Source: Auanema rhodensis (taxonomy: Eukaryota; Animalia; Nematoda). From it: a stretch of DNA of 64,000 nucleotides. Made by a program: the position numbers and the translations under genes. The stretch is from positions 9,486,001 through 9,550,000 of the forward strand of contig OZ059894.1 in the NCBI GenBank assembly GCA_964057225.1, in the 5' to 3' direction. Positions 1 to 58,384 of the stretch are shown in pieces. The notes beneath the pieces were generated by a model. The model was given only the letters and a program-made list of their open reading frames with translations. It was not told the DNA's origin and ran no database searches. Each line of letters starts with the position of its first letter. The first letter of the stretch is position 1.

Positions 1-661
1 AACAAACTTGTATCTTCGTATTCACTGTCTCATCTATCTCTTTTAAAATTTTAAAATAATGATAGGTCGAAGCATTTTGAACCAATTGTAATGCTGTGGC
101 CCTGATTGACTTGAGTCACATGGCCTATACTAAGGGAAAGGCTCGCTGGGCTGTTGATCACAAGAGAAAATTAAATGTTGCAACACAGAGAGACTCAAAG
201 AAGAGGATAGTTGCGAACACAAGTTCAATTGAATACGCATGAGGAATGACATTCATCTGATCTTATCATATCCCTCAAATCCTAGCACTGTGTGATTAAA
301 GTCATCTAATACGCTCGAGGCATTTCCCAAAGACAATAAATCAAGAAATGTAAAGTGCCAGAAGAGTAGTCTGTCTATACTTGCGTATGTATAACGTTCC
401 TAAACTAAGTTAATAATTTTTAATAATTTTTTCAAAAAAAAATTTAAAAAGTTTGAGGAAATAAATTTTTTTTCACAATATTTTTCAATCTTAAAAATAT
501 TATTTCAATAATACTCATCAATCAGAATTAGAGAAACTCACGTGTCATATGCCACGCTTATCACGTTCAGTAACTGACGTCATTTCTTGTCGACGAAACA
601 AGGATGAACGGTTGCTATCTCTTCAAATCTCAAACTATTATCTCATCCCACCTCTTTCCTG

Positions 662-699
<38 letters not shown>

Positions 700-2515
700 C
701 TTTATATGTTTTTCATGTTTAACCTATCAGCCATTACATCTTCAGCAAATTATTTTCCTTTATTTCGCATATAGCATCAAACAAGCCCTATAACAAGCAT
801 CAAACTTGAGTTTTAAAAATAATCGAAAAGGATTTCATGAGCAGATATTTGATTTTGGTTGCCCTAAGTACAAAAACGTGAACAAAGAGAAAAACAAGCA
901 AAACGGAACGGACATTTAAAACAATCAAAACGTTTTCATCCTTAGCATGTTCTAACCTATGAAATGTGACTGCTGGGGACATATGGCTGTATGACTCTTC
1001 TTAGTAGATGACTCGACTACAGAAGACGCAATGAATAAGAGAAAGAGCAGCTGTTTTCAAAGTTCAAATCACTTTTTTAACATTGAAAAGAGACAATTCT
1101 GGCTTAAGAATGTTGATGAGTTACCTTTGATCAAGATGTTCGGTGAAAACATTACAAGATGTATCATTAATTATTTTCATTTTTTGATCATTTATCCAAA
1201 TTCTGTGCGGGTTTAGTGCACTCTTTTCAGCCAATTTCTTTATTTTTTCACATCTCCTGATGTACTACTTTCATCCACAAACTGATATGTAAGACAAATT
1301 CGTCTTGTTGGAGGAAAATATTCTTAAATCATATGTATAAATATAGATTTACATATCTATAATATCTATAAAATAGATGAAGACATGAATGAAAGACATT
1401 AAATCATTGGTAAAGTCACGAAGAGATAAAGCCAGGCATTTCCCTCCATCACAGACAGCTTAAATGGTCTTAAAGGGGGCCATAGAGGAAGAGATAGATA
1501 GAGAGAGAAAGAGAGAGAGAGAGAAACGTACAAGGAGTGAGAACCATCCATTTTTATGAGGAAGCCATCACCATATTTCTTATATGATCCACCGAAATTC
1601 TCTTTTCTTTGAAGCACTTCTTTCATTTTTAGAAGATTTGAACCCGAAACGTTTACAAACTTGAAAACAATTTTATAGTTCAAACCAAGTTTTATTATTA
1701 TTTTCCAAAAAAATCAAATAAAAAATCAAATAAGAAATGTTTTTTTAGAATCCAAATCCTTCATGAAAACTTTTCAAATAATATTATTATTTCATAAATT
1801 ATTATTAGTCTTTGTTTTATAATCAACACATGTAATCAAGTTTATTACTATTCAAATATAGTATAAACCATACATTTAGATAATTAACTATACTATATAG
1901 TATAGAATATCAAATATTTAGATATTATACATAGATAGTTATCTGACATCATCTATCAATCTTGAATAATAGATTATGAAAGTGAAATTTAGAATTCAAA
2001 TTGTGAAAAGGATTTAGATGGTATCTCAGCTTTTCCATTCATTTCATGCAAAATCTATAATCTTGACCTCTTGGCCTTCATCCGCTTAGATGCATATGAA
2101 CGTCCTTTAATGCCTTGATTTCACCAACTTTTTTATTTATTTTCATTTTGTTTGACATAAAATATTTGGAACCATTTTGATCTTTAAAATTAAAAGAAAT
2201 ATTATTTTTAAATAGAAATCAAATTTGTACAATGAAGTTTCTGCAAACATTGTTGATATTTGGCATTGTGCTACAGATAGATGGATAGATTTCAATTTTT
2301 CTTTACATTCTCTTCATTATTTTGGAGCAAAGTTAACCTTTTGTGCCAGTATTTCACCTCATTTTCTTGCGAACATTGGCTTTTTTTGATTTTCTTTTGT
2401 GGCAAGCAATGACAGCTTTAAGCTTACACTCAGGCTCATCAAACTGTTCTTTGCTCTTTCATAAAAATTGCCAAACCTTTTTTCTTCATCTCTAAGCTCT
2501 AAGTTGATTTGGTAC

Positions 2516-4864
2516 AAGTGTCATCTGATACGACAGGACATCTGTTGGAGGTTGAAGCTGATGCTCCGCACCAGTACCGAAATCGACGACAACTATGATT
2601 TTACATCTGATTCATGCAGCCTGTCATGCACAGCACACTATATTTGGCTTTGAATAGATTTCATGAGATGCAACCTCAATGAAAATAGGATGAAAACCTG
2701 TGGTTGCTTGTGAGATTGTGAGAGGCACAGAGATGAGACTGATGGATGGAGTCTCTCTCTCTCTCTCTAAACACACAGCGAAACTCAGACGGTCACGGCT
2801 CTCTGCTTGTTTTCTATGAGCACAAATCAAGCTGTTCTTGGGATGTGCACAAGTATTTCGGAACACATTGAGCATGAACATGTTCACTCCATCTATATTT
2901 CTTTCTTTTCTCAGCTCACATGATTGCTTGTCTTTGTGATATTTGAGAAAAAAACATCAAAAGGAATACATGCAGATGACATTTTCTCCATTCGTGAGCA
3001 ACTTGCCCTTCAGCATTATTCTAAAACTTACCGAAATGACAAAGGGATTGTTCTTCACTATGTCTTACAACGGTACCAATGATGATGCAATCCTCCTTTC
3101 TAACTGAAGGCACAACGTCCAATTTCTGTTCAGAAATTGAGCCTTGTAACATGAGTCACTCATTCAATTTGTATTTTTGCAACAACAAAGAAAAAAATAA
3201 GAAAGCATTATGATGTTATTTCTCTTAAATTCATTTTTCCTTTTCTCTTTTCATCTTCATCATCATTTTGGTGAGCTATCACTTACGCTTGTCGCCGCCA
3301 TTTCATCCATTCTCCAGGCTACATCTTTTTACCTCTCCATCTAACTTTCTCTATTTCTTGCTGTCCTCTCTTTCTACATTCTCATGATGTGCTGTCACCT
3401 ACGCTTTTTGCTTCATTTTCTCTTTACAATCACAGACAATCCTTTAGTGCTAACCCTACATGAGGTTAAAAGTGCTAATGGATCAGATGAATGATACCGT
3501 ATAGATATATAGAGATGGTTAAAAAGGGAGAAAGAGAGAAAGAGAGAGAAAGAGAGATAGAGGGAGAGAGAGAGACTTATACATATCTTTGTAGGAAGAA
3601 TATTGTTCAGATTATTGTTCAAAAATAAAAAAAAAGTTGTATTTCCTACTATTCATTCATTCTAATCTCTTCTGTATTATTTTGCATGAATCACATCTTT
3701 TGCAAATGCCAATTGAACATGAGGAAAGAGAAAGTATTCAGTTTTTATGACATTTGGCCTACAGTTTTTAGTGATAAAATTGTTGAAATGAAATAAAAAA
3801 AAAACAAAAAATCACTAGTTTATCATGTTTTACACATGATTTTTCAATTTTTTTTCTTACAAGTATGGATATTTTAATTAAAATGAATAAGAGTCAGTCA
3901 TTTCGAATTCTAATCGTCCAATTTTCCCCAGCACATTCTCACTATCCGACCAAAACACACACCCACTCAACTATTTTTCAAAACACACGTGAATAACGTG
4001 AAATCAGCATATTTTTATTATTTCATTTTGATTTCATAACAGGCTTAAAACGGTTGTTCTCTTATCTTCAAAACTAAACAATACAACAACAACAACAACA
4101 ACAAAACAAAACAACAAACTGTTTACACAAGTAATTTATATTGTTTATTTGATTAATAATAAAAATAAATAAAAATAGAACATTTTTGATATGAAAAATC
4201 TTCTTTAATATTCCCAAATATTATATTCTAATTATATAATAAATTTATTTATGCTAATGAGCTATAAATTTCACTTAATAGTTCATTTGTTCCGGCAAGA
4301 TGGCTTTCACACGCAAATAGTGCAAGCAGTTAATGAGCTGATTTTATTTCCAGAATGATTTAAAGACGTTAATGAAATTTTCCAATAATCCAAAATCTAT
4401 ATAAGAAGAGACAGACCACCCATTAGCTATTGAAATTACAAAAACAGTTATTCTCGTTTACATTTGACATTTGGAAAAAGATGATGACAGTCAAAAGAAT
4501 AGAAGAAGGTCAACATTGAAAGAGAGAAGAATATTTTCAATTCTGCCTTCACTGCCCCCCCCCACCCCCTCCAATCCTTTACTCTTCGACATTCATACCA
4601 AATACTGATACTTCTCTTTTTGGCTTAACAATTCTTTACTTTGTCTCAATACTAAGTGTCCATAAAGTTTTATTTATCTTTTACTTCATACGGGGCTACT
4701 CAAAATCAAACAACTTCTTATTTCAATTTTCACTTTTAACAATCTTAAATTAAAATCATTTTATCATATTATTCTATTTTGAAAAATATCTTGTTTGTTC
4801 AATGATTAACGTATATTACCTATGTTTATTTCATCTTCCATATCATATAATTACTATTTTCCCA

Positions 4865-4895
<31 letters not shown>

Positions 4896-5176: not shown

Positions 5177-6014
5177 TTCCACTAACTATATCTAGTTATC
5201 AATTGTGATTTTGCATGATTTTTCGACTGCCTGTTGAGAGCATTGTGCAGAAGTTTCGCCTTTGCTCTGGTCTTCTGACATATTTTTTTGCTGATCATCG
5301 TGTGAGCTATGTTTAACAACTGTAAGATTCATTTACAATTTGTTTCAAATTTTGCAAGCTCCGTTCCCTTTTCTCTAATTTCTCGTAGCTTTCTTGCATC
5401 ATTCTTCAGTGGGCGGAGCAAGAAAGTGGGCTGGACTGCGAGCACGTCCTCTTTGTTGCTTCACTGGCCATTAGTCCAGAGAATAAGGCATCATCTCATT
5501 CCATCATCTACCGTTCATGCAGCTAGTTATCTATTCCTCCACATTTCATATACCATGATATCAAGTGTCTAACAAAGAGTTTATGAAGTTATTGTGTGTG
5601 TGTTGGGTAGTCTTGGATTGATGTTGTGTCTCTCCTTCCTTCTCTCATCTCTTTAAAGCTCTGATTTTCACGAAGCAGTCATCTATCACAGATATTTACT
5701 GAACATGAAAATCAAAAATGCCCTTTGTTTGATCTCTTTTTTTCTCTGATTATTTACAAGGAAATCGTATTTTTGGATGTGAAGGCTGTAGTTCACTTGT
5801 CAAGCCATGTGATTATTCAGCATATGATTTCGAGCATTACAACCTTTGAGAAATGCTTATCTCTCAACTGCTCTCTATACATTTGACTGATTTCCATCGA
5901 CATATTGCTCATCTTCCATTTCACGCCTGCATATCATATTCATGTACTTCTTGCGATAAATGTTTTTTTTCTCGTTTTCAATCGTTTTTCCGACTTTATG
6001 ATGAAAGCTTTCAG

Positions 6015-6658
6015 ATGCGTGCCTTCATTTTGCTCAGTCTGCTCTTCGCTTCCGTTCTCGCTTTCCATTTACAGAAAAATGAATTTTTGGATGAAGAATA
6101 TGTGAGTTTTAGTTTGGAGAAACCTTCTTCAACTTGTCGCTTGTTTCAATCTCATAATGCTTTTAATGTTCAGTTAACCAGAACTGTTCGTTCTGCAGAG
6201 GACAGCAGTTCATCCGAGGAAAATGAGAAAGCTGAAGCTCAGGGAAATAAGGTATAAACAAGAGGGTTATTGAACTGAAAGCTTATTTTTGATGTTTTCT
6301 AGGTCGAAGAAGAAGACAGTTCCGAAGCTTCTGGAGATAAAGATGAGAAGGAAGAGAAGGACGAGAAGGAAGATGAAGATGGTTCCGGTGCTCGCTTCAT
6401 CCGTGACACCGATGAGGGTTCTGGTGACAAGAGCAACTCTTCTGAAGAAGATGAAGATGAGGGATCTGGAGAAAGATTCGTTCGCGAAGTAGAAGAGATT
6501 GAAGGATCAGGAGAAGTATCTTGAATCAGACTATTGCTATTCAATAACATACACATTTTCAGCTCATCTCCTCTCAGTCTGTATCTGTTGTCGATGAGGA
6601 AGGATCCGGAGAAGGAGCCGATGAAACATTCTTCAAGGAGCCAGCCTTCTTCTTCTAA
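6015..6658 (+). CDS. Small secreted acidic chondroitin-proteoglycan-like protein (CPG-8-like), 4 exons, ~157 aa
   Basis: tttcag-ATG. Exons 6015-6101, 6174-6251, 6303-6515, 6563-6658 join in frame. Signal peptide MRAFILLSLLFASVLA, six acidic Ser-Gly sites (EASG, DGSG, 4x EGSG), RTVR/RFIR/RFVR motifs, ends FFKEPAFFF*. Confidence 0.8.
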
Positions 6659-8150
6659 TAAGTTTCATCCAATTATAAGCTTTCCTTTCAAATCTTGCTT
6701 GTCCTTCTTTCTTTCTCTCCCTCTCACTCCTGCCGTGATATGTGTAGACTGCTGTACTGAGAAATGATATTCCCGTTAATTTTTTTTTGGAAATATCATG
6801 TTCCATCAGCAATCAAAGCTCGTGCTATCGATGATTATGCTCATCGTTCTGGTGTTTTTATCGTTTTTAAAACGTCGTAGTCATATTTTTATTTGATTGT
6901 AATTCATTATGATGATGCTCTCCTCTCCCCTCACTCATCAGAACCGTATTATTTGAAAATTCAGGATTCAAAATTCCTCTGTTGTTCCGCAAAACGCTGG
7001 TTTATGGATTTCAGAGAGGTAGATATGGCTTCTAGACCATATCTAGCATCCCATTACTTTTAGTATTTTATTTAATTTAATATTAAAATCTTCTAATATC
7101 AGAAAAAATGTTGAAGAACTAAGCTCCTTTCACCCCTAGTTTTGGCCCCCCGCCTCCCCCTTATGGTTTTGAAAATCTCCACCCCCTCAACATCAAGTCA
7201 TCTGACCCATGAACTATGTTTGTACATTGCCCATGATTGTGTTTTACACATATGATCATCATTCATTTGTCATTTTGATGAACATTTCTAACAATTTATC
7301 TTTTATTCAATCAATTTTTATCTTGAAAGTTCAATCAAAACTATTAAAATACAGCAGAATATGAAGATGCAGATCTACAAGATATTCAGTTTATTCTGAA
7401 ATGGTGGTCTATGCTGGTCATTCATGAATTGTTAACAACAAATTCTGAATATTTACGAATATGAGAGTGATCATAATGAGGAAACTTTAAAATTTATTGT
7501 TTAAACTTTGTTTAAACTTAACCTTTTGACATGTATTTGAATGAAAAATGAAGGTAATAAGGTGATTAAGCTATACGTTTGTTCTCTTGTTTGATGTCCT
7601 TCACATAGTATACATGATGAAATGCGGATATTGCTGACCAGTGTAATTAATTCTGGCCATCATCATCATCATCATCATCATCGTAGTACGTAAGTTCAAA
7701 TGAGTTGTTTAATTGAAAATTTGTGGTTTTTTCTTATATCAGACAACTGATTGTACATGTGATAGCTGACTAATAACAAACCAGCTGTTGCTGTTCGATC
7801 AACAACTGATAAAGTTGTTCGCAAAGATCACTACATTGAAGCAAAGCAAGTAGAGAAAAACGATATATAATGAAATGAAACTTATTTAATTGACCGGCAA
7901 ATTATAAGAAAATCATTCAATACACACAATATACACGATATATACATAGAAATATACATATATGTTAGAGATTTAGTAGCATATAATGCTGTTAAGTAAC
8001 GATGTTTCGAACTTGAAACTCTGAACATCACAGTTTTCTTCGAGAGGCGAGAGTGAATGTGTCCGAAAACAAGAAATTCATGCAGCTAATCGTTTGTCCT
8101 AATAGAAATCGGAAAGAAAAAACTAAGAAATAGGCAATTAAGGAAGAGTA

Positions 8151-9013
8151 TTAAGGAGCTACCAGTTGGCGATATAAGTGATATCGTATCCTCATCAATG
8201 GATCTTGTGTATTATCTATGGGAAATGGCAGACTATCGTCGTCTTTCCAACAGATATCCAATAATTCTTTTAAGTTATTTGCATTTCTCATCAATTCGCT
8301 TATAAGATGCCGAGTAAATAATACATGACCATATTGAGCTTGATGAGCGCGATACTTGTCACACAGGATCTGTTGATGCTTCCGACCACAGGCTGAACAG
8401 GCTGAACCGCAATTACGACTAGCATGCTTCGGGCCCAAACAACGCTGGCATAGACCCATGCTAGATAGACGTAGATATCGTTCTTCACCATTTTTATACA
8501 ATTCGCAGTCTTCTGAATGATGGACAGATGAGCAAAATAGACATCGACCATCAACCAAATGAATAATATGCTTCTGAAATGAGAAAGTACATGGTAACAT
8601 ATGATGATCAAACTATGACATACAACTACTCTTGACCAATGACGCATCAATTCTATAAACGTAATTGTTGTTGCCACAATACGTCGTCGAATTTCCGGAG
8701 TCGAAGTATCGTCGTGCCAAGCTTCAAATTTCGGATTTCCGGCATGATTAATCCAATAATCCTTAGCTTGATGAAGCTTGACTGTTTTCTTCCAAACTTC
8801 TTTCATTTGCCATCGAATATTCTTGATATCTTCGTTATAAACATCATCCAAATCAGAGCCTTTATACGAAAGATCATGATAAGTTAGATGCATATCAGAC
8901 AGCCATTTTGGAAAATTAACTGTTGACATGGTTGCTTCAAGATATTGATCCACTAATGGATCATCCCAAAAGTGTTCAGCCTTTAACGTTAATATTTCTG
9001 GAGGAATTGTCAT
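8151..9013 (-). CDS. Intron-containing protein with BEL/Pao-type Gag triple zinc knuckle (candidate domesticated gag), ~270 aa
   Basis: tttcag-ATG at 9013. Exon 1 9013-8624, a 50-nt GTATGT..TTTCAG intron (8623-8574), exon 2 from 8573 in frame. Contains CLFCSSVHHSEDC, CQRCLGPKHASRNC and CSACGRKHQQILC. The 3' end is either the stop at 8151 or a short extra exon (DKRLAA*). Confidence 0.8.
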
Positions 9014-11644
9014 CTGAAATATCATTCTAAAATATGGAAATTTGAAGTTACAACATCAATTGAAAGCTCAAAATAACAGAAAAAGAGGAAACCTATTGAA
9101 ATTCTAATAATTTTTAATTGAATTAAAAAAAAATAAAAATTCGAATATCCTGACGTATTTCACGTAAAATAACGTGTCAATTGGATTTAATTTTTAAATT
9201 TACGTGTGAATGACATGCATAATGGCCATATAGAATGGATGTGATAAGCCAAATAAGAATATTTTTCCTTTTTAGCAAAATAGTTATTTCTTTTATAAAA
9301 AATACTAAAAAAATAGAAAAAAAAGAGAAGATTATCAAATGAACAACTTGAAAAAGTATAAGAAAAATAAATATAGAAATAGAATATAATTTTCAAAAAT
9401 ATAGAATTAAGATTTAGAGAAAAAAAGAGAAAGAGAGAAAGAAAGAAAGAGAGAGAGAGAGAAAGAGAGAGAGAGAATGCAAAGGAATGTGAGAGTCGAA
9501 AGGAGGGAGGAAAGAAGGAAATAAATTAAATAATAAACATCCACTCTTCAAAAAGTCAATTTGTATCATTAAAATCAGGTCTATTATAATATTATGAAGC
9601 TCAAAACCAACTCATTATTCAGATTGGACAGACGTCTTTGTAGCTCATTTGGAGCCAAATATTTTCAGATTGTACTTTTTACTATAAAAGATCAAAAAAT
9701 GCAACAAAAGAAAAATAATATTATCAGACAATTCAGTTAAAAAGATTAATAATCAATAATATTTTCAAATGAGAGAAAGAAGATAAAAAAAATGAAATCC
9801 TTAAACAATAAAAGGAAGATTAGCAAAAACAGAAGAAAATGAGAAAACGAAAAAGGAGAATTAACATGAATGAGAGGGATCAATACCTATGGATATGTAT
9901 TATATCGAAATATTTTTATTTAAAAAAATAATATCTAAATCTAATATGCGATAAATTAAATTGAATTTACAACTAAATTGGCGAAATTTTAAATAAAAAA
10001 TTGTGGAAAAGCTTTAGCTTCAAGCATTTTTATGAGCGTAATATTGGTAATTAAATGGGAGAACTTTAAAAGATTTGACCAATTTTCGATAGAGGAAATA
10101 GAACGAGAGAAAACTGAAAGACCACCCTTAACGGAAATGATAAGCCTTGTTGAAGATATTTGGATTAAGCAATGTAGTGTCAGCTGTTCATTCAGAAGAA
10201 CAATCTAAGTCGTTATCCTGATGCCATCACGCTTGTGACTAATAGCTCACACATACGAACGCCACAATCAAAAATTGAAGTTTAAAAAAGAAGTTTTAAG
10301 ACTAAACATGGATGCAAACTCATGGGAAAAAATAATTTTTGTGAATTAATGAGAGAAATTAATGAAAAGGGGGTGATGACAGACGTGGCGCAAACATAAA
10401 TTTCTTGGAAAAAACAAAGAAAGTCCTTAATATTCTGAGAAACGAAAAAGCTAGATTAACAGATAGACACATACATATACACAGAGACAGACATAGACAT
10501 GCATAGGCACTTCATGGATTGAGCTTATACTTGATAAACTAATTGAATATGAACCTTGAAGGAATACGGCAATTCAATTATTTCATTTTAAGACTATTTT
10601 ACAACACAATGATAATACGTATCTAAGTTCAAACTAGAGGAGAGGATAAAACAAATGAATTTTCTGAATGACGAAACTGAATTTGGAGGAAATGTGGGTA
10701 CTTGGCTTGGATCTGTTAGAAGAAGAGAAAGAGAGCATGTAGAGAGCTATGAAAGCACTGAATACGAGCTCTGAAATGAAAAAGAGACTGCAAGATGTTG
10801 GAGGAAAAGCAGCAGAAGGAAGAAAGAGAGACGAGGAAAAGGGAAAAGAGAAGAAGAAGAAGAAGAAAAGGACAGCCGGCTGGTCATCTTCGAGATTTGT
10901 TCATTTTAAGAATATAAAAAATGTTTGTGATTATGTCTTGCACAGGCTTTTCACTTCAGCCTATATTTCAGTCAAAATATCTTACTTAACACATATGAAA
11001 AACATGCTTAAAACTGATTTTATAAGATAAAATATTAATAATTAGAATAATAAAATGCAGAATATGCTCATTTTAATGAATATATATCAAGTTTTAAAGT
11101 AAGTTAGAACATATAGTATGTATATATCAGCAACAAATCTATGTATCTCATTACGAGTTTTGGTGTTGAATTCAAGGTTCAGCTTATTCGCATGATTTCA
11201 ATCTCTAAATTACATTATAGTTTTATATAATTTGATTTCATATTAAGTACTTCGTATACATATAGTCAAATATAATTATAAAATCTTGTTTTCAAGTTTA
11301 AACTTTTGTTATACTAACTATATCCATAGTTATTCAGGTTATTCTAATGACCTTTTCTTCAATATTTAGATTCTGAGATGCTCTGCAATCAATTATTCAT
11401 ATAATTTTCTTAAAAGTTTCACATAAACCATGAAAACAATTGAAATTTTCTAAGAATTCCTATCTTTTCTTTTATTTTTCTTATAGAATCTAATTATAAT
11501 ATCATATCCTATATTCTAATTGGCACGTGCTACGTGGAATCACGTGATAATTGCCACGTGAAAACTGTAAAGTCGTACTTCTTGATCATTTTTTTTTTCA
11601 AATTTTTTAACTTAACTATATATAAATAGTATATATTACTAATT

Positions 11645-13522: not shown

Positions 13523-13593
13523 AAATTATTTTTGTATTTTTCATTTTTGTTATTTCACTATTGGTTAATCGGTTGAATACATGTATTTAGGAT

Positions 13594-15992: not shown

Positions 15993-16027
<35 letters not shown>

Positions 16028-19000
16028 ATCTTCCTCTTCCTTGTACTCGGATTTTCTCTGAATTTCCTTTCTATTTTAATAATTTTTATTCTGCTTACTT
16101 CTCCTCGTTTATCTATTTCCTCATTCCTTTCCTCTTCGTTTCAAAGCTCTTCCTCTTACGTGTGCTGCCATTACTTTCTCTCACCTGCTAAATCTTATAT
16201 TTCCTCATCTAGTTGTCTATTATTTTCATGAATTTGCTATTTTATGCTCGCAAAAACTGCTTCACAACTAAACTCTATCTCTCATTTCGACTTTATTTTA
16301 TCTTTTTTCATCCATTCTGATTGCAAACTATCATGACATCATTATTTGGAAAAAATAGAACTAGGGGATGGCCTTTATCTCTTCCTCTCTCTCTCTCTCT
16401 CTTTCTTTTTTTCCAAAAATCATTGTTGTCGTGCATAGCAGTGAGGGAAAACCGGGTATAATTCCACGGATTTTCATATGAATGATGGTCACAACATCAA
16501 ATTGGCGGCAGGCAAGCGTCCATCCAGCTTTGTTGTCATCAAATCCGGACCATTTTCGGATGTTTTGTGTTACTTTAGCTTTCGTTTACGTATAGTTTGT
16601 TCAGACAACGTTCTTTCTAATTCTTTCCAAGCATGTATTGTGGAATTTTGCAGAGTAATTTTGCAATAGATTGAAATAGATTGTAATCGAGTCAAAAAGC
16701 GGAGCTTATGCCTTCATCCTCTTCAGCAAAAACTTCTGATTTTTAATTTTTTTTCTTCTAAAATTCTTTGTAAAAACATGAACATGTCGAAATATGAACC
16801 CATTTTATACTATATAACCTGTAAAATCATTAAATAACGCTTTTCCAATTAGGGGTTTAGTCATTCTTCTGCTATTTCTCTCTCCCCCCCCCCCTTCTGT
16901 CATGTTTTCTTCCCTGTCTACCAATCTATCTACCAAGTGTTTTTTTTAGAAGAAAACGAAAAAAAACAAAAAAATTGCAAAGGCAATAAGCTAAAAAGAT
17001 CGAAAAACGCTACCACATGTTCTTCTCAGTTCATTTCGTCTCATTTTAAAATTTGGTCACTTATTTTGTAACAGCACGTTTAACAAGTTTGTGGGCTGAT
17101 GTACTACTGGAGCACCCAAGCCTACAATTTTCGGTTCCAATGAAATGATTCTGAACATTTAATTTTTTTTTCATCAAAGATAACAATCTGCGTCTAATAG
17201 TTCAGAGTTTTTTCAACAAATCTTGGTGATGACGCCAGAGGACGGGAAAGACTAGTGATTCTTCATGAAATATAAAAAATTTTGTTCCTTCATTTCTTAT
17301 TCAAAACGTATTTGCTTTCACATTTTTATATAAAAATATATATTTATCTATGTGAATGCTGTACTTTCTTTAATTTCACCATAATTTGTTGCAATTAGAA
17401 CTTTGTTCAATGATTTTCCTCTCCAAATATAGATCATATTCAAAAAAAATGCGCTTGAAAGCTTTTTTGCGTTCTCTTCCTTCCGCCTTCTCGTACTATT
17501 CGTTTTCGCTCTCAGTTTTTTTTGTGAGTATGTATGAGTGTGGGACCAAACTTCGATTAAAACGTTATTTGTTGAAAAGTTCTATATTTCAATATCTTAA
17601 AGTCGCTTTTACTCACCATCTACTTGTCTTACCATCGTTCTCACCTTCCAATTCTCATATTCCCATTCTATATACTATCTTTGTTATGCTATATCTCCTT
17701 CTGTAGTCCCCTTGTCGCACTCTAAATCCAGAGAGAATCAAACAAGAGAGAGAGTATATATATTTTCTTTCTTCCTCCATTTTTTTTGAAATGGAAAAGA
17801 AAATAGTATAAAGCAAAACACTGTTTTAAACATAATTATACAGTACAATTGTCCTTTCATAGCATAAAAAGCTGATAACTGAACCTTTCTATTCATATTT
17901 CTGAACATATAATCAGCTCAATTTATGAATTTATTTCTATTTTATGCAATAAATACATATATTTCTGTATACACATTTGTTTTTGTCATCTATCCCTTTA
18001 ACATTCTCTTACTTTTCATTTAAAATTTTTAAAGTTCTTCTGTGTAATTTTTAAAAGTGTTCCACATCAGCCTACCGACTTATTTCTGTTCACAAATCGT
18101 CATTATGTTGATTCTCTACTTTACTCTTCTAGTCTATCTATTCACCTTCATCTTTCTTTCTATCTCTCTCTCTTTTTCTTTCTCGTATTAATACTCTCTG
18201 TTCTAAAATCTCCTTCTCTCTTTGTTGATCTCTCTGATGCTTTCTACTCGTTTCAACCAATCGTAATGGGTGGTGAAACCTGTTCACCTGGTGCCCAAGC
18301 CGAGCCATCCTTTCTTCCATAAATACCATCAAATCGACAGTTTTGTAAGATTTAATGTCTGAAAATTCACGGCTAACATCTCAAGTTGGCTAATATCATG
18401 GATTTCAGCTTTTCGCAATTATCGAAATCTCATCCCCTACTTCTTCTGTCCATACAAATTCGTGCGAAATCACCTCAGCGATTCCACAATCTGCTTACCT
18501 CCTGCCGATCTGAAAAGTTATTGCAAATATGATTTATATAGTCTCGCTACTATTTCGTTCAAAAATTTTCATTTTAACGGCCAATCAAGAAAAAAAAATT
18601 CTGCTTATCGTGTCAACACGAGCGTATTGTATGGTCTCACATTCATGTGTTTTTTCTCGAGTTTTCTAGCAAATGCCAACTTTCACGGGAAAAACTGCTC
18701 TCAAATGAAATATTACAGCATTTAATTTTTTTTTTATTAAATATTTTACAGATTATTAAATATATAAAATTTTGTCAAAAAAAAAATAAAGATATAAGAT
18801 TTTAACATTACACTATTACAGCTGATTAAAAAACAAGAAAGCCATTGGTCAAATGGGCGTCGTTTGTTTGTTTTGTGGTCAAAAAACAAGATTTTTCGTT
18901 TTTTTCTTTTAAATAATTTTGTCGTTCCTAGCCACACTGACACTGCTGATAGTTGTAAAATTTTCTACTGAAAAAATCGTTTAAAATTCATATCTTTAAG

Positions 19001-20028: not shown

Positions 20029-20082
<54 letters not shown>

Positions 20083-41262: not shown

Positions 41263-41345
41263 CTAGATGTGTATATTAAATATTTTATTCAGTTTATTGT
41301 GATGATATAACTTAATTAGTTTGAAGCAACGGATTTTAAATGAAT

Positions 41346-42705: not shown

Positions 42706-43693
42706 TCTGTAAATAATAATCTTTAATTATATGTAAAATTAAATAAAAATAACAAACAATAGAACAAAAAATAAATTTAAAAAAAACCTAAAAATTAATA
42801 ATTTTATCTTTTTCTTTCTCATAAAAATAGAGTTGTATTGATTTTTTGGAGTATTTTTTATGAACAACATCAATATTTTTCCATAATTCTTTGTCTATAC
42901 ACACCAACTTTATCTATTAAAGTTGGATTTTTCAACTTTTTTCTTAACCAAACTTTAGGCAAAAGTAGAAAAAATGGTTTAAACATAAGATTTACTTCCT
43001 TTCTATTTCATAATTCCGAAAAAAATCTCTTATAACAGGTTATTTTGGTGCGAGAACCTATGTTTTAATGCCAAATACAATTCATTTAAAAGGTTTAATA
43101 TTACTTTTCAAAAGTTATTTAATACTTCTATTTCAAGAAAAAAAAGAAGAAATATATAAATTATTTACTATAAAGATATTTATCATTTTTTATAAGTTAT
43201 ATGACAATTTTTGTAAAATGTTGTAGTTTGATCGAGGTTGGATAAAATCAAAATGGAAATGGTTATACTATTGTTTTCATCTTAATTTAAGTGACAAGTA
43301 GTCAGCTGTCAAGTTTCATATAGTTTTTCCGAGATGTTCATTAGTTAGTTCAGAAGAACATGAACAGATGTTTTTCCAATTATAAAGATCTTACTATACA
43401 TATGGTTAGGAGGCTCTGTTATTCTCTTGTTTAAACTAGAATAAAGCTTAATATGCTGTTAGGGTATAATAAAAATAATTATTTCGATCTTGCCTATGTA
43501 TGATTAAGAGCTCTTATGGCTTATTGGACTTTGAACTCTAAGATCAGTAGATCGAAGATCATCCTGGATTTGCTCACATGGGCTTTGTGTTACGGTACCG
43601 CTGACCTAGGTGCATTTGGCTCCGCCTACTTTGAGCCTGTATATATAGAGATGCACATGCTCATATTCTTCAGATTCGACCATAATCTCTAAA

Positions 43694-44343
43694 ATGGCTT
43701 CATCAATTGTTCTTTTTTCTATTCTCTTCGTTTCTGTTATTGCCTGCCCCTGCGCTAATAAGGATAAGGAGCAGCCCAGTCCACAGCCTACTGCTAACTC
43801 TGATTTTGATTGGAAGACTGCTGATCGCATTCGCTTAGCACAGAATGTGCTCTTTTCTCCTCCCAAGATGGAAACCCCTCTCTGCGGAGATGGCTGGGAA
43901 GTCATGAAGGAGTCTTGCTACTATGTTGAGAGAGATGAAAAACTTTCTTACAATTTGGCTGAGAAGAAGTGCCGCAACCTTGGAGCTACTCTCTTTGTTC
44001 CCAACACCAAGGAAGAATATGTAAGTTTTTTCTAACTATACCCTGTTTCTCATTCTAAGCATTACAGGAGCTCCTCGCTTTCGACGCTCCACAAAACTTC
44101 TTCACCTGGTCTGGACTCACTAAGAAGACCGATACCTCTGAGCCACAATGGTCATCTCCAGAGGGTGTTGACTTCAAGCAATTGAACTGGATCAACCAGC
44201 CTTACGGAGATGCTGTTAATGGATGGAGCACTGCTTCTCAATGTGCTGCTCACTTCAACTCCGTCACCAAGTACACCTTCTGGTATCCTTGCGATTTCGC
44301 CAACTACTACATCTGCGAGCGTAATGCTACTCTAGTTCATTAA
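43694..44343 (+). CDS. Secreted C-type lectin, clec-87/88/91-like
   Basis: Signal peptide, CGDGWEVMKESCYY, AEKKC, LFVPNTKEEY|, WSGL, NGWSTASQCAAHFN, FWYPCDFANYYICE. Exons 43694-44020 and 44068-44343. TATA-like at ~43640. Confidence 0.92.
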
Positions 44344-45161: not shown

Positions 45162-48100
45162 ATGATCACGGTATGAACATCATTCATAATATTTTTCATG
45201 TTGTGGTTTATTTTGGTCAAAAATCATTGATTGATATCAGTATGTGCATGCTTTTGACTCACTTATCTCGTTCTCTCTTATCTGTTTCTCTCTCGCGCGT
45301 GCGCCCTAAATCTCTTCCAACTTTTTTTTTTAATTTAAGCATGCTCATCTAACAACTTCAAAAAGCATATTTCATCAGTGATTTAATGCTTTATCCATAA
45401 TTAATATGAAATTTTCTTTTTTTTAGCTGTTGCTGATTAGCCTGTTGAGCTTGATTCCATGCTCAATCGCAGTCGATACGAACACGTTACAGGTGCAAGT
45501 AGGAGATGAAGATGCTTTCGGTAAGGACTCTGATTTGCATCTTTGAGAATGGAATGAACCTTTGAAATGACTTTGCGTGTGCATGAGCTTTTCTAACTGT
45601 TTTTCCGACTTTCTGACCGCTGTAGCTTCTCTGACTCTTTCCATAATAGTATCCTCCTCCTCTATCCTTTCGCAGTATGTTCGCAAAGTTTTTCCAAATG
45701 TAAAAAACATTTTCTCCTTTTTTGGCGAAAAATTAGAATAAGAACGTAGGCTCGCAGGGAGAACTATGGCGCTCGTGTGATGAAGTACCGTGTATTAGGA
45801 ATTTCGTCTGTGTGATGAGAAAGCTTACATGTCTAAGCGATCAATGCTCCAACATATCACCATTACCACTCTGTGTTCCTGGAGATCCACGTATATACAT
45901 TAGCTTCTGTTGATCACAAATTCTTATTTTCAATTTGCTTTCAGAACATAACTGTGCGTTTGTAACATGTGTCGATGGTTTCAAATGCATTCATGTGGAA
46001 AATGAATGTGATACTACTCCATGTCTGCCACAACCAAAATGCGTAGCATTTGAGTAAGTGGAAGAAGCCTTTTCACGAATTACAGTTTCATGTTCATCAG
46101 CAGTTCTGCTAATGAACCGTTAATGAAACTTGAATGAAACTTGAGTAGAAATGAAAACGATCACGACAACGTGGATTGCGTTGCAAACGATACTGACATT
46201 CTTTCAGTTTTCAAATCTTACTTTCAAGTTTTGATATTTTAATCCTAATTTCGTTTACAGGGCCTTAACTGATAAAGTTGAACAAGTCACTTCAAGCCCT
46301 AGTTCACAAGAAGATTCGGATAAACCCCGACCTCTTAGTGATAGTAGTATTCAACACTTACATATTCCTCTCCCACCAGGAAGTCGCTTTTTTCAACTTT
46401 ACATGTAGTAACTTGTCCGAATTTAGCAAAACGTCCACCTAAACCAGAAATAGATACATCACTTCCAGCAAGAACACAAATATTCCAAATAAAGGATACT
46501 AAGAGCAGGCGACAACCAAGTTCTATACAACCTGGTATACACTTGTTCAAATCTTCGCAACATAAAATTCTTTATAGTTACAACTACGTCTCCTACACCA
46601 GCTCCAAAAACCTCTGCCAAGACGATAGCATTGGAAAGGTCCGTCAAAACCACTAAACAACCTGAACGGTTAACAACACATACCTCTCCAATTACTCGTA
46701 TTCCTTCTCGTCCTATCTTGTCCCGTGCTGGAAGAATTCACCCTCACCCAACGCATAAAAACTCTAGCAAACCTATTGAGAAAGTACCAAGAAAAGTTTT
46801 ACAACCACATTTGTCAACCACAACATCAAAACCTGTTGACCCACAACCTCAACATCCTCTAAATCAAAAGATTGTGGATCATAGAGAAGCCCGCAGAGGA
46901 TCTCTACGACTACCTAAACCTATTGTTGAGCCTATAAGTCAATTTAGTACACAACATTTGACTGAAAGAGCAAGACCACGTCCTCAGCAACCGGAAAAAC
47001 CTTTCAATCCCATACCTACTTCATCACCTTCTATGGCTGAAGCTCCAGTGGATGAGGCACTCCCAGCTAATATACAAGCTTCGCGAGCTGTGAGCTTCAT
47101 ATTCTTGGATGCTAGACCTGAAGTCATCAGTGCTATTGGAGATTATGCCTGTATGTTATAACTCTACCATCTAGTAATATTATGGTTATAAACTGAATGT
47201 TCACATTTATAGATAGAAATCGTGTACATCGACGTGGCGGTAGCTTCTCTCGTCAACGATACATCACCCGTACGTCAAGAACTGAATCATTTATTTTTAA
47301 AATCAGCCAAAACTTTCAGAAGATCCTTGTGCCAGCGTATTATGCGGAGAAAACCAACGATGTGAAGTATGTCAAAGAATCTATGACAAAGCATAATCCT
47401 CTACCTCTATTCTAGGCAATCTCAGATACAGCAGCTATGTGTGCTTCAGTACCAATATCCGCTTCAAATCGAGCTGTTCCTCAATTATCGTACGAAAAAT
47501 TAAAATTTGAAATTAAACTGAATTCGAAATATTCTAGGCAAATTGTGAGTCCATGGGCAATACAACCACCAACTAAAGGAATAAACAGTAAGTACTTGAA
47601 AAAATTTTATTTGAATCAAGTCTTTAAATGACGAAAATACGTGAAAAACATGAATTGCAACTTTAATTTCAAAGAAAAAATGGAATAAAAACGTTTGAAT
47701 TCTGATTTTCAAAAAGAAAACCTGAATTTGAAATGAAAACATTAGTTATATTTCATTCTTCAGATTTGAACAACTTTGTTTCTGGAGCTGTTAATAGTGT
47801 CCAAGGATATATCTCGCAAATCGAGTGCATTTTTACAGGAAAATGTCTTTCGGGTATCTATATAGGTTAAACCTATAAAATAATTTTTAACTATCCTTTA
47901 AAGATTATCAAACAACTACAAACTATCCTCGTCCCCCTACTACAACTACGACAACACAAAGGTTTTACTACATTTAATCCTGTTTGTTTTATTGTTTTTC
48001 TCAAAGGTATATTACTATTACTACTACTCGAGCACCTACAACTAGATCTTATGTAACGAGACATCCTTGTGATTCCATATACTGTATAAACGGTTTCTGT

Positions 48101-48589
48101 GCAATTAGAAATGGACGTGCTCAATGTGTTCCAGGTAATATAATGGAATTCTATATAGCAAAAGCCAATATATAGTTAGAAGATGCTTTGAAATAGCGGT
48201 ATTTTTATTTAGATTATATCACAGAAACTGCGAGACCAACGACATTATGGCCAACTCGCCCCGCAACAACAGCCACGACAACCACAACGACCACAACGAC
48301 TACAACGACAACAACTCCTCCAGCAGCCCCAAAATGTGGACCGTTTGAAGAGCTAAGCACATGCGGAAAAAACTGTGAAGTTACTTGTACAGATGTGAAA
48401 ACGGTATCAACTAGGCACAAGCTATAGATCCCTCTATATTTCAATTTTTAGGGATGTGTACCACAATGTGGAACCGTGCAAGAATGCATCTGCATGCCCG
48501 GATTCTATCGTTTTGCTGATTTCTGTGTCCGCTCTGCTCTCTGCCCTGTAAATCCATTCGGAAGAGCTATTCCTTTACCAGGAAAGTGA
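45162..48589 (+). CDS. Secreted mucin-like protein with follistatin-N-like Cys repeats, Pro/Thr-rich tracts and a C-terminal TIL domain
   Basis: MIT|LLLISLLSLIPCSIA signal peptide. Cys modules CDEVPCIRNFVC, CAFVTCVDGFKC..CDTTPCLPQPKCV, DPCASVLCGENQRCE, HPCDSIYCINGFC. Poly-Thr at ~48265-48315. Ten-Cys TIL CGPFEELSTCGKNCEVTC..CVPQC..CICMPGFYR..CVRSALC. Some internal junctions unresolved. Confidence 0.8.
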
Positions 48590-48831: not shown

Positions 48832-48915
48832 TGTCATCCGCAGGATTCGAACCTGCGCCCTCCGGAGAGGACTGCGACCTGAACGCAGCGCCTTAGACCA
48901 CTCGGCCAGAATGAC
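48832..48915 (-). tRNA. tRNA-Leu(CAG)
   Basis: GTCATTCTGGCCGAGTGGTCTAAGGCGCTGCGTTCAGGTCGCAGTCCTCTCCGGAGGGCGCAGGTTCGAATCCTGCGGATGACA: cloverleaf with long variable arm, A/B boxes, and a downstream TTTT terminator. Confidence 0.98.
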
Positions 48916-49088
48916 TTGTAGTACTAGTCATTCTTTTTCCAACATAACTGATAATAACAACCAGACAGGAGAGAGAGCACACAAAAACAAGTAAAACGAT
49001 TAAAAGCATTGCTTTCATTTTATATTTTTATGAAGCATACTTTTTAATTTTAATCTGAACAGTTGATTGAGAGTTAAAACATTTAATT

Positions 49089-50617
49089 TTATGGATTATA
49101 ACAAATGTTGGAACTAAAACCAATAGACGTAATTGGTCTTAGTTTAACAGATGATCTCACAAGGCGATCCTGAAATGGCAAAACGATAAGAAATAACTTG
49201 TTTAACGAAAGAAAACTTCTTCATTTCCTTGTTGAAAATCAGTGACGAAAGTTGCGGAAGGAGGGAACATTTTTGAAGATTTGCCAAATGGGTCCTATAG
49301 TAACAAATCCAATCAGAAAATGTGGAGTAATTAAACGAATAGGATTACAAGAAGTATAGTGAGAATCAGATTAATTAAGAGAAATAAACGTTGGAAATGA
49401 ATTATGATATCGTCCTACCTCATTTGATATGCCACAATCTTTTTCTGATATAATGCTGGTCAGAATAAGCATAGATAAGCAGTCACATATGATGACGACT
49501 GAAACAATTTAGTACATGTTTGTCTTTTAAATTTGTACTTTGTATTACCTAGACCATCTGATGGACCAGAACTTATGATTGTCATTAAAAATTTTTTTAT
49601 ATTTGATATGGCCGAGTCAAGATCAAGTTCCTGAATATGGAAATATTTGACATATCATTCTATCTATGAATATATCTGATTATCAATGTAAACGAATTTA
49701 CCTTCGTATGATTTTCCTCCTGATACTCTTCATCAATGCTATAACCTAATTCTTTCAAAGTTTGTGGTGCAATCCAAAACGGCTTCGCAACTCCATTTGT
49801 CGCTAATAGGCTACTTATTCTGATCTTACTAGGCATTTTTCTTAATATTTGTATTTTTAACGATCATTTAACTGTCTACGTACTTCATGGAAAGATACAT
49901 CTGCTGAATAGCATTAGCCGTTTCTAGGCAAGCTAATGATGGAGAAGAATATATCTGATGAATAGGTCGTTTCGTACGTTGCAAGAGCTCTTTGGCAACC
50001 AGTTGCGAACATACATTTCCCATCTAAACATGAAAACAATCAAATATTTTGCCAATTTCGATCTAATCTTACCACACTCAATGGAGGATCAGCTTTGTAA
50101 GCTGCCTTTAGATTAGGCCGTTTTGGAATCTCCACCGGAATATTCTAACAGCAGGGAAAATTACAACTTTTTAACACAGAAGCTTACCAAGTCATAAGGC
50201 AAATAAAAGCTTTTATCTAGTTGACTGTCGTCTATCCACTCGGGAAATACTTCAGCCAATGTTTCTCCGTGTCGAACCAATATTATTTCTTTCCCACTCA
50301 AAGGAATAGTCGGTCCTAATAGCTTAAATAGTATTTATAACCCATAGAAGAATAATTTTTATTATTTTTATTATAGCATTGAACCCCTTTCATTAGATAA
50401 TGGTCTTGGTGGATATTGCTATAGTAAGCTAATAATAGTACTATTAGTGTTTTCAGCAGGTGTTCACATATCTGATCGATTTCAATTCCATTTTGTATTG
50501 AACCATATAATTAATTTTACCATTTACGTTCATTGTTTGAATAATAGTGTTTTCAAATTTTGTTTTATCAAAATTTACCTTGAAAGATCCAATAACTTTA
50601 TCAGATGACGTTTTCAT
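49089..50617 (-). CDS. Histidine phosphatase (PGM/STS-UBASH3-like) family protein, catalytically degenerate; 5' exons uncertain
   Basis: IILVRHGE (50274-50263), YLPYDL|NIPVEIPKR, DPPLSV|MG, IYSSPSLACLETA, GYSIDEEY. Stop at 49091-49089. Confidence 0.8.
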
Positions 50618-50952
50618 TTCAAGGAAGACGAAGATCAACCGGTCACTGTTCTTCCAACTGTTTAAATGCGCTGAGTAGCCAAATCATTCTCACGTTTATT
50701 TTTTGTCTAATTATATCGATTTTTATTTTATTTTACTAAAATAAAAACCTTAATTTTCCTTTTGACAAAAACTTTAAGCTCAAAAACCTAGGGTTAACGA
50801 ACACGCTAAAATGCGTATTTTGCTGTTCACCTAAAATTAAATTTTAGCACGTAGCCTTACAAAGCTTTTTTTGTCCAAGTTTAAAATAAGCTGCTTGTTT
50901 TCAAATCAAAAAATTGTATACAACTTACAGTTTCAAGCAGGGAGTTCAAACC

Positions 50953-55321: not shown

Positions 55322-55464
55322 TTTAAAAACTTGATAGTACTTGCAATATGTTTTGTAATATAGTAGACTTGTTATTATTATCTAAAAATTCATACTTTGT
55401 TGAAATTTTGTATTTTTTCGAAAGAAAAAAAAAGACAAAAAATAAAGTTTTCATAAAATTATCT

Positions 55465-58384
55465 TTAACTTGTTGCTTCAAACATTTCATCAAGCTTTGA
55501 CTTTAGTTCCTGTGAGGAGATATGCTCAGGAAATAACTCTAAAGCTTTTGTAATAGCAGCTCGGCTTTCTTGATAATATCCCATCTAAAATATAAAATAT
55601 GTTTAAATATGTATTGTCTTGTTATTACGTCAAAAGATAGGAGAGCTAAGTTGTAATGAGCTTCGAACAAATGTGGATTCTTGGTAATTGCGTTGTGGTA
55701 TAGTGATCGCGCTTGATCCTTTTTGCCTAAAAGTATGGCCGATAGATGATATATCTCTCTTCTTGTTGATTACCAGCTCTCTGAGATAGTATACCTAGGT
55801 TGATCATTGCTTCACCATGATTAGGGTCAGCGGTTAGTGCTAAACGATAACAACGTGTAGCCTGCTTTACGTCACCAGTTTGCTGAAATTGAAAAATAGC
55901 TTTCAGTTGAAATGAAATCTGAGAATACAATCATAATATGTCCTATGTTATACCAAATTTCAGCTGCTACATCATCAGTAGCTAAGGATTGAGCTCTGAA
56001 ATAAGATCACATCATGTGGGAGATCATGATTTTCAAACTTTAAGATCGATGCTATAGCGAAATCATATTGTTGGCATTCGAAGCAACATAAGCCTATGTT
56101 GAGTAGAACTTCAGCGTTGCATATTCCCATTTGCATAATTCGCCTTTAGAAATAATTGAATATCAAAGCTTAACCGAGTTAGATCAAACCTGTAATATCT
56201 TAAAGCTATTTCCGGCTTTTCTCCATAATAGTAGTTTGTTGCTATACAAGCAATGGCTTCAATGTTGTTGGCTTGACAACTAAGAATTTCCTTATATAGA
56301 TTAATCGAGTCATCCAATTCATTCAATTGCTGTAAGGATCATCGACATTCATTGCATGTACATATGTTTATCTGTGATACCTCTTTTACCCGAGCTTTTC
56401 CTGTCAACAATGTTACTTCTCGAGGAAATTGTTCAAGCCCATCGTCAAAATGCTTGATTGCCAGTAAAGGCTGATCGACACGACAAGCAATCTTCAGAAT
56501 ATTTCGTTTTAATTTGTATATTTAATGTAATTACCTTAGCTAAAAATGCATATGTTTCAACTAATTTGATATGCTTCAAAGATGAAAGAAATTGCTTCTC
56601 AGCATCGGAAAACATTCCTAATCTGAAATATCCAGAATGAAAGAGGTGTAACGTTGCTCCAACTAACCTATAGTAGCATTTCCCCAACTGATTTTTCCAG
56701 TACCAATCATTGTAGTCAGCAGCTTTTGTGGCTATTGAGGCTATCTAAACATATGGAATATCTCAATATTGGAATTCAATAAAGAACTTGATGGGCAATC
56801 TTGATATCAGCTTCTAAGTAGAAAACATATTCGAACAGTTGTCTGTTAATCTAAATTTTAAAATGTTATAATCATCAAGTATTGGAATGTAATTGCCTGA
56901 GGATCTGCAGCATATTTATCAACGTTTAATCGAGCTAAGTTCAAAAATGGCCCATCTGATGCGGATGCCATTGATGCTGTACCAAGTCTTAACATTCGTG
57001 CTGAACTACTACTCATTGCCCTAGCTGTTTTAGCTGTTCTACTCGTTCTAACAGCCTAAAGATACATGTTTTTACTCGTTGCTCTTTAATTCAAAATGAC
57101 TTGTTCCATTGTTCCTGGTCTCATAGTAGTTAAAGGTCTAGTAACACCAGATAATGGTCTACCAGCATTTGTCGTTGGTCTAAACATATCTCTGCCTGAT
57201 ATAGCTTTGCCTTTAAAACTACCGAAGTATAGGATTTGCTCCTTTAGCACTTGTTGATGGTCTTTGGAAAGATGTCCCTGGCCTAGCACTTGGAGCAATC
57301 ACGTTCTGATCCAAAAACGTTTCAGCTGGAAATAGATGATAACTCGGAAGAAATCAAAGATTAGCTCTACCAATGCCAATATCTTCATTTTCCAATTCAT
57401 CCACATAGGTTGTTTCCGTTAGACAAGCCATTTTCAAAGCCCATGCTGCCTGAACATTTAATTTTGAAATATAATCTAATAATCTCAGTTTGATCTCAAA
57501 AACGTATTAAAGTCCAAAATTATCATAAAAAACTTGATTACGTGAGAAATGCGTGAAAAACATTGAGTTATTTATACTTTTTGAACTCATTGAACGGTTG
57601 TATTTTTATTTTCGCAATTTTTGTGGATGAAGCTCAGTTGAGCTTTTGTTATTTCAGATGTTCAGCTAAGTTATTATCGTTCCCCAATGGATTTTCACAG
57701 ATATTCTGAACAATGTTATCGTCGCCCACGCTCTCTCTAAGAAACTATTACAACATATTCTGATGATTTTCTGTTGGTTGTGTGTTGGAGGGAAACCCCA
57801 ACACACTCGGTAACAACTGCTTACACTGAGATATAATGAAATTAGAAGAGATATATAGAGACAAGAACCATTGAATACTTAAGTTAATTGGTAAATTGTA
57901 TAGCAGTAACACCTTGTTTAATAGATAAAATATCTTATAAGATGATATTTACCGCATTGTTAGCAATATGACAACGGTTATGCTCATTTGAAATCAAAAG
58001 TAAATAAAGAAAATTGAAAAGGAACAGAAACTTTAAATTGTTTAATGAAGAATCAATTGATTATCAATGTGAAGTGGTGTTCGGAATATGAATCTTACTA
58101 TATAATTTCGAATTATTTATCGAATTTCAGTTTAATATATCTTTAGATTTTGAACTTTAGCATATTTTCTTGGACTAGTAAAAACATTTTGATCATTTTG
58201 TGAATTGCGAAAATAAAAATATTAAGATTGAAAAGTTATAAATACTTACTTGATCCAATGGATTTTTGCTTAACAATTTGGTACACTCATCTTCAGCTTC
58301 TTTAATTTTATTAGCATGAAATAGACGTAAAGCTTTAAAAAATCCTGTGAATTCAAGTTTTTCAGAAGACGTTTGATTATCCAT
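55465..58384 (-). CDS. bbs-8: BBSome TPR subunit BBS8/TTC8
   Basis: LLSKNPLDQ|AAWALK, GRPLSGVTRP, RLGTASMAS, DWYWKNQ|LGKCYYRLGM, NNIEAIACIATNYYY..PEIALRYY, TPR repeats. X-box upstream. Confidence 0.96.

Follow-up and report, generated by a model that had tools for sequence, protein, structure and literature searches.

A fixed-spacing two-box element in Auanema resembles an Initiator plus MTE/DPE core promoter

Work on flies has characterised downstream core promoter elements well; in humans they are rare or poorly defined. In the described code, the Initiator reads TCA+1GTY in flies and BBCA+1BW in humans, the downstream core promoter element of flies (DPE) has the form RGWYV at +28..+32 from the Initiator A+1, a one-base shift being harmful, the motif ten element (MTE), CSARCSSAAC at +18..+27, has been revised to CGANC at +18..+22 plus CGG at +27..+29, and Initiator + MTE/DPE promoters work in one direction (PMC5580651). 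Saito et al. (PMC3730108) report no enrichment of either DPE or MTE at the start sites of C. elegans, and our literature search turned up no description of a DPE-type promoter from a nematode. Here we analyse a stretch of the nematode Auanema rhodensis (contig OZ059894.1; 64 kb, 34% G+C; hereafter the window) in which the hexamer CGGTTG recurs downstream of ACGTG boxes. We find that CGGTTG is held at a nearly fixed distance from a third, Initiator-like box, a geometry that points to a core promoter of the Initiator plus downstream-element type.

The window contains 14 CGGTTG hexamers, seven per strand, where the original prediction, made by eye, had counted about 12. Same-strand distances from ACGTG to CGGTTG within ±300 nt fell at +33..+69 in 13 of 17 cases, and ACGTG-N28-58-CGGTTG (33-63 nt) matched eight times against 0.07 expected from dinucleotide shuffles. 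The recurrent ACGTG...CGGTTG element is real on this spaced-dyad comparison, which we ran within the window and which gave a strong excess, and the nine ACGT-to-CGGTTG pairs that had been listed were all found in place. The spacing of ACGTG and CGGTTG is loose (33-78 nt), that of TCATTT and CGGTTG rigid. TCATTT stood out in k-mer enrichment between the two known boxes (8 of 14 copies, 3.4% background), a T(C/T)ATTT-type box lies 28-29 nt 5′ of CGGTTG at 10 of the 14 window sites, and T(C/T)ATT stands at -28/-29 from the C of CGGTTG at eight of them (about 1% by chance). ATTT-N22-23-CGGTTG gave nine matches in the window against 0.23 expected, and the -28/-29 box is also found at CGGTTG sites without ACGTG. 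The geometry thus supports the fixed-spacing core promoter proposed originally, but the fixed pair is T(C/T)ATTT/CGGTTG, not ACGTG/CGGTTG. Likewise, TTTCATTTT, noticed in three copies, is present there but is not limited to them, T(C/T)ATTT being fixed at -28/-29 in most copies.

We compared the element with a second Auanema genome. A protein query with the window's aspartic-protease open reading frame (ORF) identified Auanema sp. JU1783 as the nearest public genome; the window's own proteins were missing from the protein collection searched. Two JU1783 loci, L001 and L002, supplied 42.6 kb, giving 106 kb of Auanema DNA for word counts together with the window; L002 is syntenic with window 39.5-53.5 kb, inverted. 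The element is present in both genomes: in JU1783, the -28/-29 box occurs at 8 of 14 CGGTTG sites and ACGTG at five, and ATTT-N22-23-CGGTTG matches six times in the 42.6 kb. In 68 kb from Necator, C. elegans and P. pacificus, an outgroup sample with 18 CGGTTG hexamers, the same pattern gave no match and T(C/T)ATT stood at -28/-29 of none of the hexamers.

Taking the A of TCATTT as +1 places the C of CGGTTG at +27, CGG at +27..+29 and GGTTG at +28..+32. The pooled Auanema set comprises 29 CGGT(T/C)G sites, 20 of which have B-Y-A-T-T-Y at the right place and were used for per-position counts. Their Initiator-like words are TCATT(T/C) in 15 copies, fitting BBCA+1BW, GCATTT in one, with the CA+1 core kept, and TTATTT in four, which agree with YYANWYY alone; at +2, the Auanema words have T in place of the fly G. 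GGTTG (once GGTCG) begins at +28 in 13 copies, +29 in six and +27 in one, and its spacing from the Initiator-like box varies by at most one base. When TCAKTY was used as the anchor (A = +1), GGTTG lay at +28 in ten cases and at +29 in four, with 0-2 at each other offset from 18 to 40; the outgroups showed no such register. C+27, G+28, G+29, T+30 and G+32 are found in 20/20 copies and T+31 in 19/20. Relative to CGGTTG, T is present at -25 in 19/20 and at -24 in 18/20, G at -3 (G+24) in 15/20 and A at -2 (A+25) in 16/20, with A or C usual at +26 and, in the first set, C+18 in 9/14 copies. GGTTG is a perfect RGWYV, and A+25 and C+27 fit the MTE tail; G+24 is reported to have a role in flies, in the 2000 work of Kutach and Kadonaga. 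TATAWA was absent from -38..-24 in all 19 copies scanned.

The hexamer is strict, because CGGTTG words with one mismatch carry an upstream ACGTG only at the chance rate (9/248); the -28 box is likewise at chance level around them. A mirrored, divergent partner element was not found, so the module is one-directional. Comparison of the 500-nt contexts of 19 copies (blastn, word size 7) recovered the boxes, a local ACGTG repeat of 14 nt and no other similarity; the copies are therefore not recent repeat copies. The density of the element is about one per 5-6 kb.

Upstream of the Initiator-like box, the first letter of the closest ACGTG falls between about -17 and -35 from the predicted +1 (median near -27), often with a second ACGTG 11-14 nt further up. 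ACGTGA is present in 11/19 copies, CACGTG in 8/19 and an octamer-like ATGC(A/T)AA in 8/19 (5.6% background). Judged by their letters, the ACGTG(A) boxes look like activator sites of the basic helix-loop-helix (bHLH) or basic leucine zipper (bZIP) class, and the octamer-like boxes like sites of the POU class. L001 7566-7640 (+) carries five tandem 14-nt (T/C)CCCACGT(G/A)A units, which make up the upstream portion of a copy in JU1783. This five-unit array suggests that ACGTG boxes may multiply by local duplication.

On these sequence matches, we consider it rather probable that RNA polymerase II uses the element as a compact core promoter of the Initiator plus downstream-element type, one that works in a single direction and without a TATA box. 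The A of T(C/T)A(+1)TTT, 26 nt 5′ of CGGTTG, would be the first transcribed base, and CGGTTG would lie inside the transcript at +27..+32 as an MTE/DPE contact region. The original prediction had noted that CGGT fits a YRNT start; the A of TCATTT is the likelier start. Both boxes would be read jointly by the basal machinery, which would explain a spacing fixed to one base; in flies, the reader of these boxes is TFIID, through its TAF subunits. We infer that in Auanema, too, CGGTTG would be read by the general machinery and not by a dedicated protein. Activation would come from further 5′, through one to three ACGTG(A) boxes that would bind an activator of the bHLH or bZIP class and, where present beyond them, the octamer-like site. 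Nor is the architecture undescribed, as had been proposed: it matches the Initiator + MTE/DPE code of Drosophila and humans (PMC5580651). The apparent novelty lies in how abundant and stereotyped this design is in a nematode.

The 14 window sites are listed below. Position 13570, originally an exception, is a partial member that has the -28 box and lacks ACGTG, whereas the two other exceptions (21750 and 61631) are true background hexamers with neither box. A proposed CGTTTG variant (47639->47692) lacks the -28 box and belongs with the one-mismatch hexamers, which are at chance. Absent from the earlier list were a partial member at 38356 (+) and a box-less hexamer at 46993 (-).

539-614, + strand: full copy; CACGTG 539-544; ACGT cores at 563 and 577; TCATTT 580-585 (predicted +1 = A582); CGGTTG 609-614, GGTTG at +29.
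3986-4056, + strand: full copy; CACGTG 3986-3991; ACGTG 3996-4000; TCATTT 4023-4028 (predicted +1 = A4025); CGGTTG 4051-4056, GGTTG at +28.
13541-13575, + strand: core-only copy, no upstream ACGTG; TCATTT 13541-13546 (predicted +1 = A13543); CGGTTG 13570-13575, GGTTG at +29.
19148-19220, - strand: full copy; ACGTG 19199-19203, 19211-19215 and 19216-19220; TTATTT 19176-19181 (predicted +1 = A19179); CGGTTG 19148-19153, GGTTG at +28.
21745-21750, - strand: background hexamer lacking both boxes, among long open frames.
22318-22419, + strand: full copy; CACGTG 22318-22323; TCATTT 22341-22346 (predicted +1 = A22343); CGGTTG 22369-22374, GGTTG at +28; TTTCAG acceptor 22414-22419 (+77).
28726-28888, + strand: full copy directly 5′ of the Rce1-like gene; octamer-like ATGCTAA 28726-28732; ACGTG 28736-28740; TCATTT 28751-28756 (predicted +1 = A28753); CGGTTG 28779-28784, GGTTG at +28.
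32483-32552, - strand: doubtful copy; CGGTTG 32483-32488; ACGTG 32517-32521 and two further ACGT cores; no Initiator-like box at -28.
35941-36008, - strand: full copy; CACGTG 35989-35994 and 36003-36008; TTATTT 35969-35974 (predicted +1 = A35972); CGGTTG 35941-35946, GGTTG at +28.
38305-38361, + strand: core copy without ACGTG; octamer-like TTAGCAT 38305-38311; TTATTT 38328-38333 (predicted +1 = A38330); CGGTTG 38356-38361, GGTTG at +28.
46988-46993, - strand: background hexamer with neither box, antisense within an ORF conserved with JU1783.
50615-50695, - strand: full copy 5′ of the histidine-phosphatase-family gene; ACGTG 50691-50695; GCATTT 50664-50669 (predicted +1 = A50667); CGGTTG 50636-50641, GGTTG at +28; ATG 50615-50617 (+51).
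57540-57657, + strand: full copy whose spacing is shorter by one base; ACGTG 57540-57544; TTATTT 57568-57573 (A57570); CGGTTG 57595-57600, GGTTG at +27; TTTCAG acceptor 57652-57657 (+88).
61626-61631, - strand: background hexamer with neither box at the right place, about 500 nt 5′ of the calponin-repeat gene.

The three box-less hexamers (21750, 46993 and 61631) lie in open frames, and the copy at 19148-19220 (-) lies in a stretch without clear coding signal. A (CT)n tract at 660-700 (+) and a (GA)n tract at 35870-35930 (-) stand 50-90 nt 3′ of two copies, each on the sense strand.

Two copies stand directly before conserved genes. The copy at 28753 (+) is followed by a TTTCAG acceptor at 28824-28829 (+77) and then by an ATG at 28860 (+108), which opens a short exon of the Rce1-like gene that ends at a GTGAGT donor at 28889; the exon 3′ of it has a Pfam Rce1-like match on 29092-29334. 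The A50667 copy lies 50 nt 5′ of the ATG of a histidine-phosphatase-family gene. In the orthologous JU1783 phosphatase promoter, the flanks are unalignable, yet the ACGTG boxes, TCATTT and GAACGGTCG are kept, with a CGGTCG variant and the ATG at +45. As the two identified downstream genes encode an Rce1-like protease and a histidine-phosphatase-family protein, they do not bear out the sperm or germline gene class suggested originally. Two tandem element cores lie 390-430 nt 5′ of a JU1783 C-type lectin gene and are missing from the window, which implies turnover of copies. The lectin gene itself (window 43560-43700 (+), L002 9330-9480 (-)) has a conserved proximal promoter with a GCTCCGCCTA box and a TATA box, so TATA promoters coexist with the Initiator/CGGTTG class. 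A tRNA-Leu(CAG) gene also lies at the matching syntenic place in the two species (window 48832-48915 (-), L002 4598-4681 (+)).

Two weaker signals occur 3′ of the element. Consensus acceptors TTT(C/T)AG end at +77, +77, +78, +81 and +88 on the sense strand of 5 of 19 copies, against 0.55 expected, for a distance interval picked post hoc after inspection of the data. A 10.3-bp periodicity of WW dinucleotides (W, A or T) runs in phase there (p ~0.01 against random sets and phase-scrambled copies), in an exploratory test that was also picked post hoc. The post hoc choice of these two tests weighs against an Initiator plus MTE/DPE promoter, and so do several observations on the element and its surroundings. 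The 5′ MTE half, CGANC at +18..+22, was not matched, and no other RGWYV words were enriched at +28 of TCAKTY. Compared with the fly DPE, the Auanema downstream box is much stricter, which could mean a dedicated sequence-specific reader rather than TFIID, and a GGTTG at +29, as in six copies, or at +27, as in one, would weaken DPE function in flies. Many copies are away from annotated gene starts: those of JU1783 include one in a 118-nt sterol-reductase intron, others antisense in carboxylesterase and ryanodine-receptor introns, and one between convergent 3′ ends. T/A strand skew over 0.5-1 kb downstream was not consistent, so most copies show no sign of long sense transcripts.

The JU1783 gene calls are incomplete, with at least one conserved gene missing. 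This is a multi-exon gene at window 45740-48586 (+), most clearly its ORF 46493-47158, with its JU1783 counterpart at L002 4852-7586 (-), ORF 5946-6905; it reaches 92% identity over 50 aa with JU1783, has no Pfam match and is absent from those calls. For codon-based gene models, self-trained scoring was drawn to simple repeats and homology-trained scoring was weakly useful. Among 30 open frames, Pfam matched only Rce1-like, calponin and Kelch pieces. The calponin-repeat gene lies at 58943-61137 (-) (Pfam Calponin, E = 5e-14). A 241-aa gag-like ORF at 8300-9025 (-) had no relative at E <= 1e-5 in a collection of 5.8 billion proteins and no Pfam match, a homology search with the lectin exon matched only itself, and a candidate K2P channel at 30.8-32.9 kb was not confirmed by Pfam. 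Four small (20-Mb) public sequencing runs, all of one study, contain 13-16% of sampled words from window 18001-28000 and almost none from 17401-23400, where their reads gave a single 199-nt piece. The matching words probably stem from the Kelch-repeat gene (about 25.7-27.7 kb), as would be expected of libraries made from RNA and not from DNA.

The alternative that survives best is that the boxes are sites for dedicated proteins, which would form a fixed-geometry module (enhancer, insulator or chromatin-organising) without setting a start; a Myb/SANT-like factor, for example, might bind CGGTTG, which fits CNGTTR. Such a module would suit the very strict hexamer, whose one-mismatch variants are not enriched, a placement that looks indifferent to gene orientation (introns and convergent gaps), and the lack of long-range strand skew 3′ of copies. 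We nevertheless regard it as unlikely: the element is strictly oriented without a mirrored partner, acceptors cluster at a fixed downstream distance, and two copies, one of them conserved, stand 45-108 nt before start codons. Moreover, the two rigid boxes fit two independent core-promoter consensuses from the literature in exact register, a fit for which a rough chance estimate is about 3 in 10,000.

The copies might alternatively be autonomous mini-promoters for short capped RNAs, as a Ruby-independent class similar to PIWI-interacting (piRNA) or 21U RNAs, of the Pristionchus (P) type, with CATT as the YRNT start. In flies, Initiator plus DPE and pause-button promoters are linked to promoter-proximal pausing. 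An extended form of the idea holds that thousands of Initiator plus CGGTTG mini-promoters in introns and intergenic DNA make short capped RNAs, a DPE- or pause-type box having replaced the Ruby motif; we find this form improbable. The copies are indeed distributed like P-type piRNA loci, which are found within introns in either orientation (PMC6436959), the density of about one per 5-6 kb is compatible, CATT fits YRNT, and the lack of canonical Ruby enrichment makes a replacement motif conceivable. GTTTCA, TGTTTCA and CTGTTTCA occurred at Markov expectation in the 106 kb of Auanema DNA, and GTTTC was at no fixed position in the copies. The high-then-low melting signature of piRNA loci is reported to be strongest in P-type species (PMC6436959), but high melting to +19 followed by a valley at +20..+40 was absent here, with a GC content of 0.32 at +6..+19 and 0.32 at +20..+40 from CGGTTG (n = 20); from the TCA start, there is a GC-rich block at about +15..+35. 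The piRNA/21U role raised originally is thus not borne out by either the Ruby motif or the melting profile. In addition, it would be odd for every small RNA to have a conserved block of 9-10 nt in or beside it, an orthologous gene promoter retains one copy, and acceptors at +77..+88 suggest longer, spliced transcripts. Short capped RNAs as the main product of the element therefore seem to us a poor prospect.

Less probable again is the geometry of the original prediction, with the start at CGGTTG, which would make T(C/T)ATTT a TATA-like box near -30. A separation of 28-29 nt is also the TATA-to-start distance, TTTTATTTT variants are AT-rich, and the DNA just 3′ of CGGTTG is pyrimidine-rich and G-poor; however, TCATTT has a C:G pair and mismatches TATAWAAR, and CGGTTG has neither a CA nor a YYANWYY core. 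We rejected this reading, as the Initiator/DPE register fits at every defined position. The least probable explanation, and one we set aside, is that these dispersed, oriented and often intronic copies are transposable-element relics, whether 5′ ends of long interspersed elements (LINEs) with an internal Initiator plus DPE promoter, as in fly LINEs, or a miniature inverted-repeat transposable element (MITE) with a motif pair, like the Caenorhabditis CERP2/CELE2 elements that seeded germline promoters (PMC9757741), since all-against-all comparison of 500-nt contexts found similarity only in the boxes, the activator boxes lie 5′ of the predicted start and so would not be copied by retrotransposition, and boxes are kept while spacers are randomised, with one copy orthologous between two very diverged species. 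Small nuclear RNA genes, for comparison with the proximal sequence element (PSE) recognised by SNAPc, were absent from the window, L001 and L002.

If the Initiator plus MTE/DPE reading is true, this promoter class exists in the nematode phylum, kept or re-invented there, and in Auanema the reading of the downstream region could be studied in an unusually clean natural setting. Annotators would also gain a sequence rule for Auanema start sites that are normally hidden by trans-splicing, including internal and antisense promoters.

Among known systems, the Initiator + MTE/DPE promoters of Drosophila and humans (Burke and Kadonaga; review PMC5580651) have in common with the Auanema element the TCA(+1) box, RGWYV at +28..+32, CGG at +27..+29 and A+25/C+27. 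One-base-rigid spacing, the lack of a TATA box and unidirectionality are common to both as well. They differ in that the fly DPE word is a degenerate family, whereas Auanema CGGTTG is nearly invariant, and in that Auanema has T at +2 where flies have G, leaves the 5′ MTE half unmatched and has a third of its copies one base off register. Auanema also places ACGTG boxes where a TATA box would be, and its initiation and TFIID binding are predicted. The Drosophila pause button is KCGRWCG at about +25..+35. Its position overlaps that of the Auanema downstream box, and the CGGTCG of JU1783 fits CGRWCG, whereas CGGTTG misses one position. Ruby-motif piRNA promoters (PMC6436959) are likewise thousands of dispersed, oriented, fixed-geometry polymerase II start modules with a YRNT-type start word, but the Auanema element lacks the GTTTC core, has 28 nt from box to box rather than about 40 nt from motif to 21U, is without the pausing-type melting profile and in some copies forms conserved gene promoters. 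Finally, the m1m2 pairs bound by HIM-17 in Caenorhabditis CERP2/CELE2 germline promoters (PMC9757741) are also a lineage-restricted pair whose spacing and orientation are fixed; of their thousands of copies, too, only some lie at annotated promoters, and a 10-bp periodic A/T signal is likewise present nearby. Those pairs lie in recognisable MITE copies upstream of the start, whereas the Auanema copies share their boxes only and match motifs of the basal machinery.

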